64,000 nucleotides of DNA, taken from the NCBI RefSeq assembly GCF_052425735.1, contig NC_135764.1:23932001-23996000 (forward strand), written 5' to 3'. A model generated the notes under the pieces. That model searched no databases. It saw only the letters and a list, made by a program, of their open reading frames with translations, and was not told the DNA's origin. The translations under genes and the position numbers were made by a program. This document shows positions 2,109 to 63,659 of this stretch, piece by piece. The DNA is from Oculina patagonica (taxonomy: Eukaryota). Each line of letters starts with the position of its first letter. Position 1 is the first letter of the stretch.

Positions 2109-4969
2109 ATGGATTTATTTTGCAAGTACGTATATTAGTCGTGTATTTACTAAATTGGAACTTGTTGTTCCAATAACAGTTGTTAACTGTTATTCAGAAT
2201 AACAGTTGTTAACTGTTATTCTTACATTCTTCAACATATTTCTTTCTTCTTATGGGTGTTTTTTTATTACTTCTTTTCCTTTTTTAATATAAGATTATAA
2301 TCGCATGTTTGCTGGCTTTTTTGGAAGTGGGATCAAGCTGGCGTCAGACGCCTCCAATGTTCTGGAGCCTCCGCTCACAGTTCAGACACAACAAACCCCG
2401 TATTGGTGGTAGTCTTGTTAGGATTGACACCGATCAATGTAAAGTATCTCCAACGGGGAGGCGGCAGTGTAAAGCTAAATGCAATGGCTCGTCTACCAGA
2501 GACCCTCAAACGAGTAAGTGAAATAAACACGTCCAGTTTTCGTGTGCTTTACTGAACGCTTTGCTATTGAGAATGATTTACCTATTAATGATTTATGAGT
2601 TTCTTAGAAATACCTTAACAGAAAATAAATAACACAATTGCGAAGAGAGGAAATTGTGTAAAAAGGAAAAAAAAAGTACTGAAAACAGGTTGACAGAAGG
2701 TGGCATCCTGGATAAATAAAGGTCGTATTGTGCTGCTGTATGCAATATATAGTTGTACGAAAGTAAGTGTACTTACTTGGTGGGAAACTGCTTTTATAGT
2801 TATTGACACTCGTATAGAGGGTACTTATTATCATGCTATATATTTTTTATTTTATTTTAACTATTGTAAAGATATCCCTTAGACTTTCCTTTTAGCCGTA
2901 ATATTAACATAGAGTATATATGTGAATAGCTTATTTAACAGGTGAAAGTTGCCTTTGAAACGAGTGAGCTATCTGCAGTTAATTCTTATGCATTGAAATA
3001 GCAATTGCAAAAGACCTTATGTGTTTTGACAAGGAAAATCTAGATTCTTCATAATTGAACCATTTTAAGTAGTCCTCCAATCAAAAATCGGCATTACGGT
3101 CACTTGTCTGCCAAACATTTGCTATGTGGGAGGGTAACATATTCAACAGAAACCAATGGAACTGTTTGCACGACCTGTTCACGTGAACTGCTACGAATTG
3201 AACTATTCTCGCACGACCTGTTCACGTGCATTGATGACGCAAATTTAATTTTAGATTAGCTTACACACCGAGTACTTGTACTGAGTACTAGTAACTGTAC
3301 TCGACGTGTAGTATGTGGTTGTATCGAAATAATCTTTAAAAAATATTCATAACTCAAGTCTTTGAGCTTTAACAGTACTTTCGGCAAATTCGCACTCAGG
3401 GCCAAAAGAAGAGTAACATTCTAAAAAGATGTCTAACGTAAAACGGTTATTATTAAAGCATATAATCACTGAAGCGCGATATTTAGCAATGTAAACACAT
3501 CACCACCTAACGATACATTTCCCCGTTGCTAACATCGATTCAAAACTTACTTTTTCGATGTAATTAAACGCGTACTGGACTCATCTGCGCCCAGGACTCG
3601 ACTTTTAATATTTCTCTCAACGTACGGTCTTTTCCAATATTAGAGTCTCGACTTAAACATATGGCCATATTGGGGTTGGGTGAATCAACAGGTGCAAGTT
3701 GTTAACATAAAACGGGAAGAAAAGTACCGTTTCGCATGGAACTGTTTTGAGGAATGTATCCCGATCCTTTCAAATAGTCTCTTTATGTCCTCAATAAACT
3801 ATTATTTCACGGATTAAAGAAGGAGAATGATTTGGAGGCGTTTTTTTAATAAAATTATTTTTTATTTTATTTTTAATTAATTTTTCCATTGAGGTACATG
3901 TGAGTTAATTATAGGAATTATCCCTGGTGCAATATTTTTAAGTGGATTCTCAGTTGCTCCTGCATTTGTACAATTTTATGACGTACTTTGCCATCTTAAG
4001 ATTTTTGCTGATCCGGGTCTATATATTTAATAGATACGGCACTCTTCATTGGTTTTTCGTCGTGGTCCTGCCTATATTAGGGGTTTTGAACGCAAAATGA
4101 ATAACCGGGTAGCTCCGCTTTAATGCTTCAATATTTTAAAGTGGGTTCTTAGTTGTGCCTGCATGTGTACAATTGTATGACGTGTTTTCCATCCACCGAC
4201 ATGCATTCAAACGTGACAATGCCTAAATGTAATTTGTTTACAGGGTTTTCGTTTGTTAAAATACGAGAAAGAATGTGCATTCAATTCACTGACGAACGAG
4301 ACGGTACCAAGTATGCACTGAAGGTTATCAACGGGATGAATGTCGCTTTTGAGGTGATTTACATAAACAACAAATTGAACAACAAACTAAAATCGACTTT
4401 AATTATACGCAGTCAGCCAAAGATCAGTTGTGTGCATATACACTCAATTTAAAATTGCAAGACATTTCAAACTTTTGTAAAAACCAGTCATTCATTCATA
4501 TCAATAGGTAGCTGAAAAGTCAAGTTACCTAATTATGAGAGGTTCTGTTTTCGATTGTTATTCAATAAATATCGTTACTTGCCTCCTTTGCTTTAATTTA
4601 CAGGTGCACCAGTGCGACAGTACAACTGAAGAGAATTTCCTGTTTGACCAAGAAAGAGTTGGAAGACTTTATCAATATAAACACATAGATATTAGCGGCA
4701 CAATGCAATTGGGCGTACCTAGGAACTGTGATGAAAACTTATCCCTTATAAGTACAACTAAACTAGATAGGCGTTGTTCGTTTAAAAAAACTCAAACGAA
4801 GATGACTTCCAAAAACGGTTTAGCAAATTGCAAATTCTTGTTAAACGAATTCTTCCAACACTTTATTCCGGTTATGGGTTTGTCAAAATTAGTTTATTGC
4901 AACCATACTAATTTTACGCCCTCTGGAACGATTCGCAGTTTCACCAATATTCTTTTATTTACTTACTAA
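2109..4969 (+). pseudogene. Beta-trefoil (FGF/IL-1-like) secreted protein gene, copy A1, probably disrupted; exons 2109-2125, 2294-2513, 4244-4353, 4604-(4805/4969)
   Basis: GT-AG exons colinear with intact A2/A3. Exon 1 lacks 7 nt relative to A2 (atggattta-------ttttgcaa), so the ATG is out of frame with exon 2. An extra A in tttaaaaaaactc (~4784-4790) bypasses the stop used by paralogs. First conserved Cys is Arg (NKPRIGG). TATAAA at 2035-2040. Confidence 0.75.
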
Positions 4970-5439
4970 AATTGTTTACCTACTTTTGCTTTTTTGCGAT
5001 TTTTTATTTGTTTGTTTTCCTCATTAAGGCAATATTTTATTTTAATTTGTATTACAATAGTTCACAATAAAACAGTGAGAAATATAGATTTCTTTGTTTG
5101 CTTCAATACCAAACAAACTTATTGCACTTTATAGAGTATCGCTCGCTGATAATACTCACTAATCTATATTCTCAGCTGATAAACCACAAAATTACACAGT
5201 TCTGACCTAGTTCTTTGACTCAGTTTTTAGGTACTTGTTCTGTTGGTCCTTCGGTACGCTTTTTGGTCTTCCTTGCTAAAAAATGTATCCTTGTCGTCTG
5301 ATTTTAGCCAACTCGGCCTACGGCCTCTTTGGCGAAGTATCAGGTGATATTCCGCGCGATTTCGCAGAATAATTGTTAAATATGCGTTGTTGTTTTCACT
5401 GAATATAATGCTCATGTTGTTTACATTCTTCACACCCAT

Positions 5440-6687
5440 GAGGGTGCTAATGGGGGTACCCAATTGTCAGTTAACTACTAATTTTTTCACCAATTGTCAG
5501 TTAACTACTAATTCTAGTTATTTATTAACTTTCATTTTCTTACAGCGAAAATTATTGCGCCATAACCTGAATTTTCTTTACTTCACCACGCCAGTGATAA
5601 AAAATAGAATGACAGGCATGCACGACTCTCATGCACGTGTGCTAACCATTTTCGATTCATAGGTTCGGTCTCACGAGTCTATCTTTGAGATACCTACACC
5701 TTTTGTATAATATTAGGGAAGGTACTTCGAATATTTTTAGAGCAATCGTTCTTGTATTAAAAGCCAATTTTTCAGGAGTATTTGCTTCAAGTTTGGTCTG
5801 TGTTTGGTACTGCTGGTTGGTATTGCGTTACAAAAGCCAAGATTTTTTTCGTTTGTTTTAAGTTTTGTTGGAGTGCCTGCTTCCTGTTTTCAACGTTTTC
5901 AAAATTAACTTCCGTGGGAGTTCTTTGGACTAAGCTTTCTGGGTAACCTCTCTCGATAAGATGTGATTGGAAGTGCTTGATTTTTTCCTCAAATTTTGTT
6001 TTAAAGGAATTTGCTGTAAGCAGCATGCAGTCTTAAGGCCTTACCTTTGATGAACTCCTGGTGGTTGACACGATGAGTAATAAGTATATTAAAATGTTTC
6101 AGTGGGCTTGTAATCGGTGCGTATGTCAAGTACTTATTCGTATGATTTGACCGCCATTTAGTGCCTATGGCAGCTCGGTGTGTTTGCACTGAGATCAAAC
6201 TTTTCCGCTTGTCGTTCGATTTCCATGAATTCAAATCCATCAAATGTTTACGAGTCATGTCCATTAAATTGTGCTTTGCCATGTTGAACAGTACGCGACC
6301 TCTGGTCACCTCTGTGTCGTTTGATTGCCGATCCTTTGTCATCATCTCGATAAAAACTCAGAATTACTTTGACCACGCCCCACTCGACGCCATCACGGAG
6401 ATTAACATGTGCCTGGTACGACCCTGGTACCTTTCGCATGTAAAATCTGTTAATATTTCACCTGGTAACGCAGCGGGACAGGTAAATGTCACAAAAATAG
6501 CCTTCCTGTCAGGAAAAACTTGGTTTCTTTATTAACAACAACGATCATATTCAGAAAAGTTGATAGAATGTCAGTTAACTGTTAACGTTTCATGTATCAG
6601 TTAACTACTAATTTTTTGGCCAAATATCAGTTAACTACTATTTTTTTGGCCAATTGTCAGTTAGCTGTCAACCCCATTAGCACCCTC
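5440..6687. mobile_element. Non-autonomous TIR DNA element with 6-bp target duplication
   Basis: 16-bp TIR GAGGGTGCTAATGGGG / CCCCATTAGCACCCTC, ACCCAT on both flanks (5434-5439, 6688-6693), subterminal repeats tcagttaactacta at both ends. Confidence 0.85.
5795..6056 (-). mobile_element. Penelope-like retroelement fragment nested in the TIR element
   Basis: Frameshifted FIKGKALRL..ANS.KTKFEEKIKHFQSHLIERGYPESLVQ...ILAFVTQYQPAVPN resembles the region C-terminal to Penelope-type RT. Confidence 0.65.
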
Positions 6688-62841: not shown

Positions 62842-63635
62842 TTAAACCAAACATATTTTGTTGAATGCTGACCTAATGCTCTCTAAGGCGGCATTAGGTC
62901 ATCATACCCAAATTGCAGTTAACAACCATAAAAATGTGAGGTTTAATTATTGTTGCACTCTGGAAATGCGTTCACGAAATCAGAAATATAAGTTATATTT
63001 CCTATAAAGTGGAAGTGAGTTAATTTTACTTTCAAATAAAAAGAGTCAACTCGGGATCATCTGAATCCGCTCGTAATGACTTTAATTGTAAACTTTTTTG
63101 TAGATGTTATTGAAATCTAAAACGACGTAAGGACCTCTTATATTTTTGAATTTGTTGTTTAAATTAAAAATGGCCAACAGTTACGTAGGGAGAAAATATA
63201 ACATAAATATGTGCCGGGCTACAAGATTGATATTAAGCCTAACAACAAACTGTGACATCAACTTTAAAAGGTCCTTCAAATACGAAATGAACCAATATTT
63301 CACGTTTAATGCAATCTTGTCAAGCGGAGGAAAATATTTGACTACTGCCTGAGTATTTAGATTGATATATGTGGGTGCCTTACGTATCTTTACACGCAAA
63401 ATGAGTACAAGGACAATACCCAACCAACTTTAACCAAGCAGACTTAATTTGAATACTGACGTTTATCGAATTATCTTTTACGCCAACGACGGGAAAGAGA
63501 GTAAAACGATCTTTTCCGTGCGTAAAAATTAACTCCAGTGATGAGGAATAAAAAGGAATAAAACTTAATAAGGTAAGTTAACAGTACTTACGCATTACAA
63601 GAATATAAAAAGTATTAAAGGTTGTTGTTCCTTAC

Positions 63636-63659
63636 TAGAAAAATACGGGCTAAATCCAT
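63636..63659 (-). pseudogene. Copy B4: promoter and exon 1 only (MDLARIFL|gtaag)
   Basis: Exon 1 and TATA conserved; ~100-150 nt into intron 1 the sequence joins what is B-type 3' flank (63480-63500 matches 11960-11990), so exons 2-4 are deleted. Confidence 0.8.

Follow-up and report, generated by a model that had tools for sequence, protein, structure and literature searches.

Introduction

Both known classes of receptor with three immunoglobulin (Ig) domains, the interleukin-1 receptors (IL-1R) and the fibroblast growth factor receptors (FGFR), bind beta-trefoil ligands. True FGFs occur across Eumetazoa, and their genes have a layout of three coding exons. Here, we describe a locus of the stony coral Oculina patagonica in which copies of a small gene, encoding predicted secreted beta-trefoil proteins, lie on both sides of a gene for a receptor with three Ig domains, a transmembrane segment and a TIR domain. 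The window analysed is a stretch of 64,000 nucleotides (NCBI RefSeq assembly GCF_052425735.1, contig NC_135764.1, positions 23,932,001 to 23,996,000 of the forward strand); coordinates are given relative to its first nucleotide. An earlier note on this DNA had taken the small genes for FGF/IL-1-like ligands of the receptor that they bracket.

IL-1 homologues have been identified across the Eumetazoa, sea anemones among them (Fontenla-Iglesias et al. 2026, PMC13736523). The IL-1anc proteins consist of a PDZ domain at the N-terminus and a trefoil, are devoid of a signal peptide and show an FES motif in strand 9; the genes for them in Hexacorallia have TRAF3, GCC2, SOX3 and ESD at their flanks and are linked to putative IL-1R genes (PMC13736523). 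A linked IL-1/IL-1R locus in cnidarians is thus already published, but for a different protein family from the one found here. Cnidarian receptors with Ig and TIR domains, called IL-1R-like, are treated as a class that is probably convergent with vertebrate IL-1R and not orthologous to it (PMC1896004, PMC5094078), and their ligands were unknown in the earlier literature (PMC1896004). The statement in the earlier note that no ligand of these receptors had been demonstrated needs updating in view of the linkage reported for IL-1anc.

A beta-trefoil family of stony corals

The copies of the small gene in the window, named A1 to A4 and B1 to B3, fall into two subtypes, I and II. They belong to a real, new, stony-coral-specific and previously uncharacterised family of putatively secreted beta-trefoil proteins, for which there is no Pfam model. 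An AlphaFold model of B3, calculated from an alignment of 66 sequences, contains 12 strands and has a predicted local distance difference test score (pLDDT) of 90.8 and a predicted template-modelling score (pTM) of 0.83. Foldseek matched it to solved beta-trefoils with a probability of 1.0 and template-modelling (TM) scores of up to 0.76, while VIA-align gave Z-scores of 16–17 over 121–137 aligned residues, with a root-mean-square deviation of about 2 Å; the matches span the whole domain. We are confident that the predicted fold is a beta-trefoil, with its twelve strands arranged in three pseudo-symmetric four-strand units. A first AlphaFold run with 8 sequences, which had a pLDDT of 60 and weak matches, was replaced by the 66-sequence run.

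Assignment to a single trefoil superfamily was not possible, as Foldseek, VIA-align and Atlas score all classes alike. The VIA Z-scores are 16.9–17.0 for HA33 and CBM13 (ricin type), 16.7 for ThreeFoil, 16.0–16.6 for FGF1 variants, 16.6 for IL-18 and 16.5 for fascin. The highest TM-score among the trefoil matches is that of hisactophilin; the best structural matches include HA33/HA17, BinA and SeviL, and the Atlas shape neighbours of the model are ricin-type domains. Neighbours in a protein language model, at a score of 0.88 that gives them the level of leads only, are RicinB_lectin_2, CCL2-like lectins, the fungal trefoil protease inhibitors I66 and I48, CDtoxinA and AbfB.

At the level of sequence, the Pfam models for FGF, IL1 and ricin gave no match at E ≤ 1 to any of 26 full-length members or to single exons. 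PDB sequences compared with the family profile gave chance matches only (Dot1) and no FGF chain. The FGF signature G-x-[LIM]-x-[STAGP]-x(6,7)-[DENA]-C-x-[FLM]-x-[EQ]-x(6)-Y is found in none of 28 sequences; its final part, [FLM]-x-[EQ]-x6-Y, is shared by 13 of them, and in some members F-x-E-x6-Y opens the third unit. The members scanned lack the full IL-1 signature and, save for one chance match, QxW. An [FL]ES motif at the position equivalent to strand 9 occurs in no member, nor does any family member match a PDZ domain. The trefoil part of the earlier designation is borne out by AlphaFold, Foldseek and VIA-align; the narrower label 'FGF/IL-1-like' is not established, with all classes scoring equally and no Pfam match.

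Like FGFs (PF00167), the coral proteins would be secreted beta-trefoils of similar size (TM about 0.7 with FGF1) with a short central exon for the second trefoil unit and a basic region with the potential to bind sulfated glycans; they differ in having no hidden Markov model (HMM) match and no FGF signature, in their eight cysteines and in being confined to stony corals. With the IL-1 superfamily they share the beta-trefoil (TM 0.6–0.7 with IL-18), and with cnidarian IL-1anc the circumstance that, at this one locus, a family gene adjoins an Ig-TIR gene. Unlike IL-1anc, they have a leader, no PDZ domain, no FES motif and no match to Pfam IL1 (PF00340). TRAF3, GCC2, SOX3 and ESD were not noticed among the long open reading frames of the window, although no dedicated search was made and multi-exon genes could be missed. 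Ricin-type lectins (HA33, CBM13, SeviL) provide the best or equal-best structural matches and the nearest language-model neighbours; they are likewise secreted, and disulfide-bearing members exist. In contrast to them, the family has no QxW repeats, no Ricin_B_lectin or RicinB_lectin_2 match and no obvious internal threefold sequence repeat.

The full proteins are 163–214 amino acids long and start with a hydrophobic leader; the mature protein, of about 160 amino acids, contains eight cysteines and ends in a polybasic tail. They are probably secreted, judging from the hydrophobic amino-terminus and the automatic UniRef name 'Secreted protein' of two relatives. We infer disulfide bonds between the cysteines. 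The second trefoil unit, strands 5–8, coincides exactly with the coding stretch of the central exon of 110 nucleotides (phases 1 then 0). The fourth cysteine of type II and of Orbicella (AKC) is replaced by Ser or Glu-Ser in the Oculina type I copies A3 and B2, which have an extra cysteine in the third trefoil unit (MQLC); this swap suggests that a disulfide may have been re-paired.

A profile search of 1.84 billion representative sequences returned 97 relatives. The named ones, on which the taxonomic range rests, are all from Scleractinia and all uncharacterised, including the two with the automatic name. They come from both Robusta (Oculina, Orbicella, Desmophyllum, three Pocillopora species and Stylophora) and Complexa (Montipora, Porites and Acropora), and the identity of the trefoils between coral genera is 50%–70%. 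Other Oculina members are located on the same chromosome (P0001, P0013, P0014 and P0016) and on another one (P0011); therefore, the family is larger than this window. On contig MU826826.1 of Desmophyllum pertusum (5.78–5.85 Mb; L003 and L004), at least four copies are found per 22–28 kb, some of them inverted, and one GenBank model of this species (P0005, 318 amino acids) is a fusion of one and a half family copies. A clostridial 'InlB B-repeat' protein of 1138 amino acids (P0087), five stretches of which match the family profile (E 8.6e-5), was judged spurious; the match is probably due to chance or to a repeated beta-rich motif. A literature search with the locus and accession names of the relatives found nothing.

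The array and its inverted duplication

The family is represented in the window by seven ATGGATTTA exon-1 units, starting at 2109, 9202, 15916 and 22232 on the forward strand and at 48638, 59241 and 63659 on the reverse strand. The gene has four exons, as derived from aligned repeat blocks: exon 1 of 21–24 nucleotides (MDL...), exon 2 of about 220, exon 3 of 110 and exon 4 of about 200. Every exon border is of the GT/AG kind, with introns in phases 0/1/0. Five of the seven units have gene bodies in tblastn searches and three (A3, B2 and B3) are intact, encoding 184, 184 and 183 amino acids, respectively; the remaining four are dead or damaged. The seven signal-peptide gene copies counted in the earlier note thus hold as exon-1 units but not as genes, and their signal peptide is a prediction. 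Type I (A1, A3 and B2) and type II (A2, B3 and the two relics) alternate along the array.

Comparison of the window with itself by blastn revealed an inverted segmental duplication, in which 11967–22624 on the forward strand corresponds to 63496–48274 on the reverse strand in blocks of about 76%–86% identity. Its inner breakpoint is inside intron 1 of a type II gene. Between the arms are the collagen gene (26.1–33.1 kb, reverse strand), the receptor gene (about 40.0–44.9 kb, forward strand) and the B3 gene body. The receptor is bracketed because an old inverted duplication was followed by decay, and no functional explanation is needed for the arrangement. The bracketing is a by-product of inverted segmental duplication and not an ordered module; the symmetry that had been read as an ordered system has its origin there. 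The family expands and decays via local duplication, in a process of birth and death.

Several repeats accompany the array. Fragments of reverse-transcriptase open reading frames occur on both strands at 52371–54414, with an RVT_1 match at 53980–54414 (E 7e-14); this retroelement is present in the right arm only. Near the start of the window, 188–507 and 639–960 form an inverted repeat of 322 nucleotides with 95% identity and a spacer of about 130 nucleotides, a foldback element or one resembling a miniature inverted-repeat transposable element. The stretch 23903–24939, just inside the left duplication breakpoint, is of low complexity and contains a (CA)n microsatellite as well as a long run rich in pyrimidines.

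Linkage in other corals

Linkage of family and receptor genes in other corals had been set beforehand as a test of the ligand proposal. We sampled nine loci of six species (L001–L009), about 225 kb in total, covering 10 kb to either side of family genes: one in Orbicella (L001), four in Desmophyllum (L002–L004 and L007), one each in Pocillopora verrucosa (L005), Stylophora (L006) and Porites (L008), and a second Oculina site (L009). Synteny was approached from the side of the family genes only, and the sampling of the Desmophyllum array leaves out two gaps of 22 and 14 kb. The probes for the TIR domain were the exons of the Oculina receptor, used in tblastn, and an HMM derived from 69 TIR sequences of corals.

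Neither method found a TIR exon in the sampled stretches; the HMM recovered only the window's own exon. Tandem arrays without a TIR gene were observed in the sampled stretches of Orbicella (2 copies), Desmophyllum (at least 9 over 113 kb and a second contig) and the second Oculina locus. Tight linkage of trefoil and receptor genes is not conserved at the loci sampled, contrary to the expectation. On contig LSMT01000480.1 of Stylophora pistillata, 8 kb downstream of a family member and on the same strand, there is a gene model of 355 amino acids with several Ig domains and no TIR domain (L006, 28003–29818). It is the sole Ig gene seen near any relative, and has no significant similarity to the Oculina Ig exons.

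State, selection and transcription of the copies

Features of the window are listed in Table 1. The models of B2 and B3 are residue-for-residue identical to NCBI proteins. In A1, the frame is open, but an Arg replaces the first conserved cysteine, and an indel shifts and extends the C-terminal tail, giving 238 amino acids; no NCBI product for A1 turned up in a protein search, and the copy is probably decaying. A2, which had been listed as usable, turned out to be a pseudogene as assembled: its exon 2 (9434–9652, 219 nucleotides) is frameshifted by a 1-nucleotide deletion, and AT takes the place of the GT donor of exon 3 after 10629. In the A4 relic, homology to B3 ends within intron 1, at the inner duplication breakpoint. 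The B1 relic has lost the 2.7 kb that correspond to the region of exons 2–4 in its counterpart A2.

Table 1. Genes, relics and duplication arms in the window
Feature	Coordinates	Strand	Description	Exons or basis
A1	2109..4969	+	type I	exons 2109-2129, 2294-2513, 4244-4353, 4604-4969
A2	9202..11640	+	type II, pseudogene as assembled	1-nt deletion in exon 2; exon-3 donor lost
Left duplication arm	11967..22624	+		self-blastn blocks
A3	15916..18068	+	type I, intact, 184 aa	exons 15916-15939, 16038-16257, 17517-17626, 17868-18068
A4 relic	22232..22624	+	type II	promoter, exon 1, first ~370 nt of intron 1
Collagen-repeat / Cys-rich gene	26128..33080	-	minicollagen-like	ORFs, Pfam Collagen
IL-1R-like receptor gene	40048..44934	+	transmembrane segment; phase-1 splice candidates	Pfam I-set/Ig_3, TIR/TIR_2
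B3 (P0007, LOC144660529)	46064..48638	-	type II, intact, 183 aa	exons 48638-48615, 48133-47935, 46726-46617, 46282-46064
Right duplication arm	48274..63496	-	interrupted by retroelement (~52.3-54.4 kb) and 1.8-kb insertion in B2 intron 3	self-blastn
B2 (P0002, LOC144659304)	55268..59241	-	type I, intact, 184 aa	exons 59241-59218, 59107-58888, 57589-57480, 55468-55268
B1 relic	63601..63659	-	type II, exon 1 only	self-comparison, exon-1 search
nt, nucleotides; aa, amino acids; ORFs, open reading frames.

A3 and B2 differ by a synonymous divergence (Ks) of 0.16, with a ratio of non-synonymous to synonymous divergence (Ka/Ks) of 0.25; between type I and type II, Ka/Ks is 0.27, and overall the ratios span 0.25–0.28. 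Therefore, purifying selection acts on the intact copies. In two public runs, contigs derived from RNA join 46281 to 46616 and 46725 to 47934, exactly at the modelled borders, so B3 is transcribed and spliced as modelled. In one RNA run (X1), B3 and the TIR exon of the receptor are both present at similar low depth, which carries little information on co-expression.

The neighbouring receptor and collagen genes

The receptor described in the earlier note was recovered: Pfam models identify three Ig exons (within 40032–40406, 40768–41091 and 42387–42869) and a C-terminal TIR exon (from about 44423 to 44934, stop codon 44932–44934), and a transmembrane exon is contained in 43396–43632. The signal-peptide exon was not located. 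With splice sites compatible with phase 1, this is the architecture of the cnidarian IL-1R-like receptors described before (PMC1896004, PMC5094078), and nothing unusual was seen in it. The Ig domains are similar to I-set domains of a generic cell-adhesion type, with domain 2 of FGFR and domain 3 of IL1RAPL1 merely among many others. In the PDB, the TIR domain best matches TLR2, TLR1 and TLR6 (E 2e-19 to 2e-18), followed by TLR5, TLR3, Hydra TRR-2 and MyD88, and no IL-1R-family TIR domain is among the matches at E ≤ 1e-3. This likeness to TLR1/2/6 agrees with the view in the literature that IL-1R-like receptors are not IL-1R orthologues. The TIR exon is 80%–89% identical to its top database matches, and the search also brought up numerous orthologue fragments of one exon each, located on long ENA contigs.

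The B3 gene is intact, as had been noted, and convergent with the receptor gene, the two stop codons (46064 and 44934) being 1.13 kb apart. Just past the receptor stop, the segment 44929–45471 shows many loose ends and a word depth of 100–1000 in each of the four RNA-type runs; it is probably a high-copy transcribed repeat similar to a short interspersed or other transposable element. The presence of an unrelated minicollagen in the interval also stands: the collagen-repeat gene has Cys-rich ends and many near-identical Gly-Pro exons, is unrelated to the trefoil family and occupies the centre of the palindrome. A link to nematocysts via this gene was considered, and no evidence was found for it.

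Discussion

The explanation we favour, and consider reasonably probable, is that of a lineage-specific family of secreted trefoils in a birth-and-death array, with an incidental closeness to the Ig-TIR gene. A tandem array of alternating type I and type II genes would have undergone an inverted segmental duplication with its inner breakpoint in intron 1 of a type II gene, and would thereby have come to lie on both sides of two unrelated genes, for the collagen and for the Ig3-TM-TIR receptor (TM here being the transmembrane segment). The proteins would most likely be extracellular binding proteins, with trefoil lobes that may bind to a target, glycan or protein, and a basic tail that may attach to anionic polymers of the matrix or cell surface. 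Several points weigh against this explanation. The gap between B3 and the receptor is closer than chance would often give; IL-1R and FGFR, each with three Ig domains, bind beta-trefoils; and the Stylophora relative has its Ig-only gene nearby. Linkage was sampled within 10 kb, from one side and with gaps in Desmophyllum. The members scanned have no QxW lectin motif, so a glycan-binding role is a guess. The linkage of IL-1anc in cnidarians is a precedent for a trefoil gene next to its receptor gene (PMC13736523).

That last precedent, the confirmed trefoil fold of the models, the tail-to-tail position of B3, its low-depth presence together with the TIR exon in run X1 and the lack of known ligands for cnidarian IL-1R-like proteins in the earlier literature (PMC1896004) are what would cast the trefoils as cytokine-like ligands for the neighbouring Ig3-TM-TIR receptor, and their linkage as that of a co-evolving ligand/receptor module. 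This proposal of the earlier note rests on one adjacency and found no support in what could be tested. We think it very unlikely, though it would be important if true: no TIR exon was found within 10 kb of the family genes at the nine loci sampled, the flanking pattern is an inverted-duplication by-product, the array has four dead or damaged units out of seven, cytokines and lectins are not told apart by the fold and the family has no sequence relation to FGF or IL-1. The two partners also differ in conservation, the TIR exon being 80%–89% identical to its top database matches versus 50%–70% for the trefoils between coral genera. Ligands of the FGF/IL-1 structural class might instead act on an unlinked receptor, for instance a coral FGFR or another Ig receptor. 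The absence of Pfam FGF or IL1 matches from all 26 members, the absence of the full FGF and IL-1 signatures and of the FES motif, and the eight cysteines per mature protein, unusual for FGF or IL-1, make this quite unlikely, even if the 110-nucleotide exon encoding the second trefoil unit resembles the FGF gene layout, F-x-E-x6-Y is present at the start of the third unit in part of the family, heparan sulfate could be bound by the basic tail in the manner of FGFs and an Ig-only gene lies near the Stylophora member.

The trefoils could also be effectors of defence or offence, acting in lectin-like pattern recognition or as a protease inhibitor, toxin or antimicrobial component. Fast-duplicating, lineage-restricted families of secreted Cys-rich proteins are typically of this kind, and birth-and-death dynamics, a polybasic tail, the structural matches to HA33/HA17, BinA and SeviL and the language-model neighbours (RicinB_lectin_2, CCL2-like lectins, I66/I48 inhibitors and CDtoxinA) would all fit. 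We hold such a role to be unlikely, as the language-model score is a lead only, neither QxW nor a Pfam lectin or inhibitor match is present, and a Ka/Ks of about 0.25 gives no sign of an arms race. Finally, and in our judgement with a slim chance of being true, stony corals may have evolved a second trefoil/Ig-TIR axis, with a classically secreted, disulfide-locked cytokine family that signals through an IL-1R-like receptor and is independent of the PDZ-bearing IL-1anc, the original ligand-receptor gene pair being preserved at the Oculina locus. The IL-1R-like receptors of cnidarians, known since 2007, have had no tested ligand; a genuine ligand among secreted trefoils would open the origin of cytokine signalling to experiments in corals.

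Under the favoured explanation, of a coral-specific array that lies next to the receptor gene incidentally, the locus illustrates that an ordered "module" can be mimicked by an inverted duplication. For extracellular biology particular to corals, be it in immunity, symbiosis, or matrix or skeleton function, the family makes a reasonable candidate.

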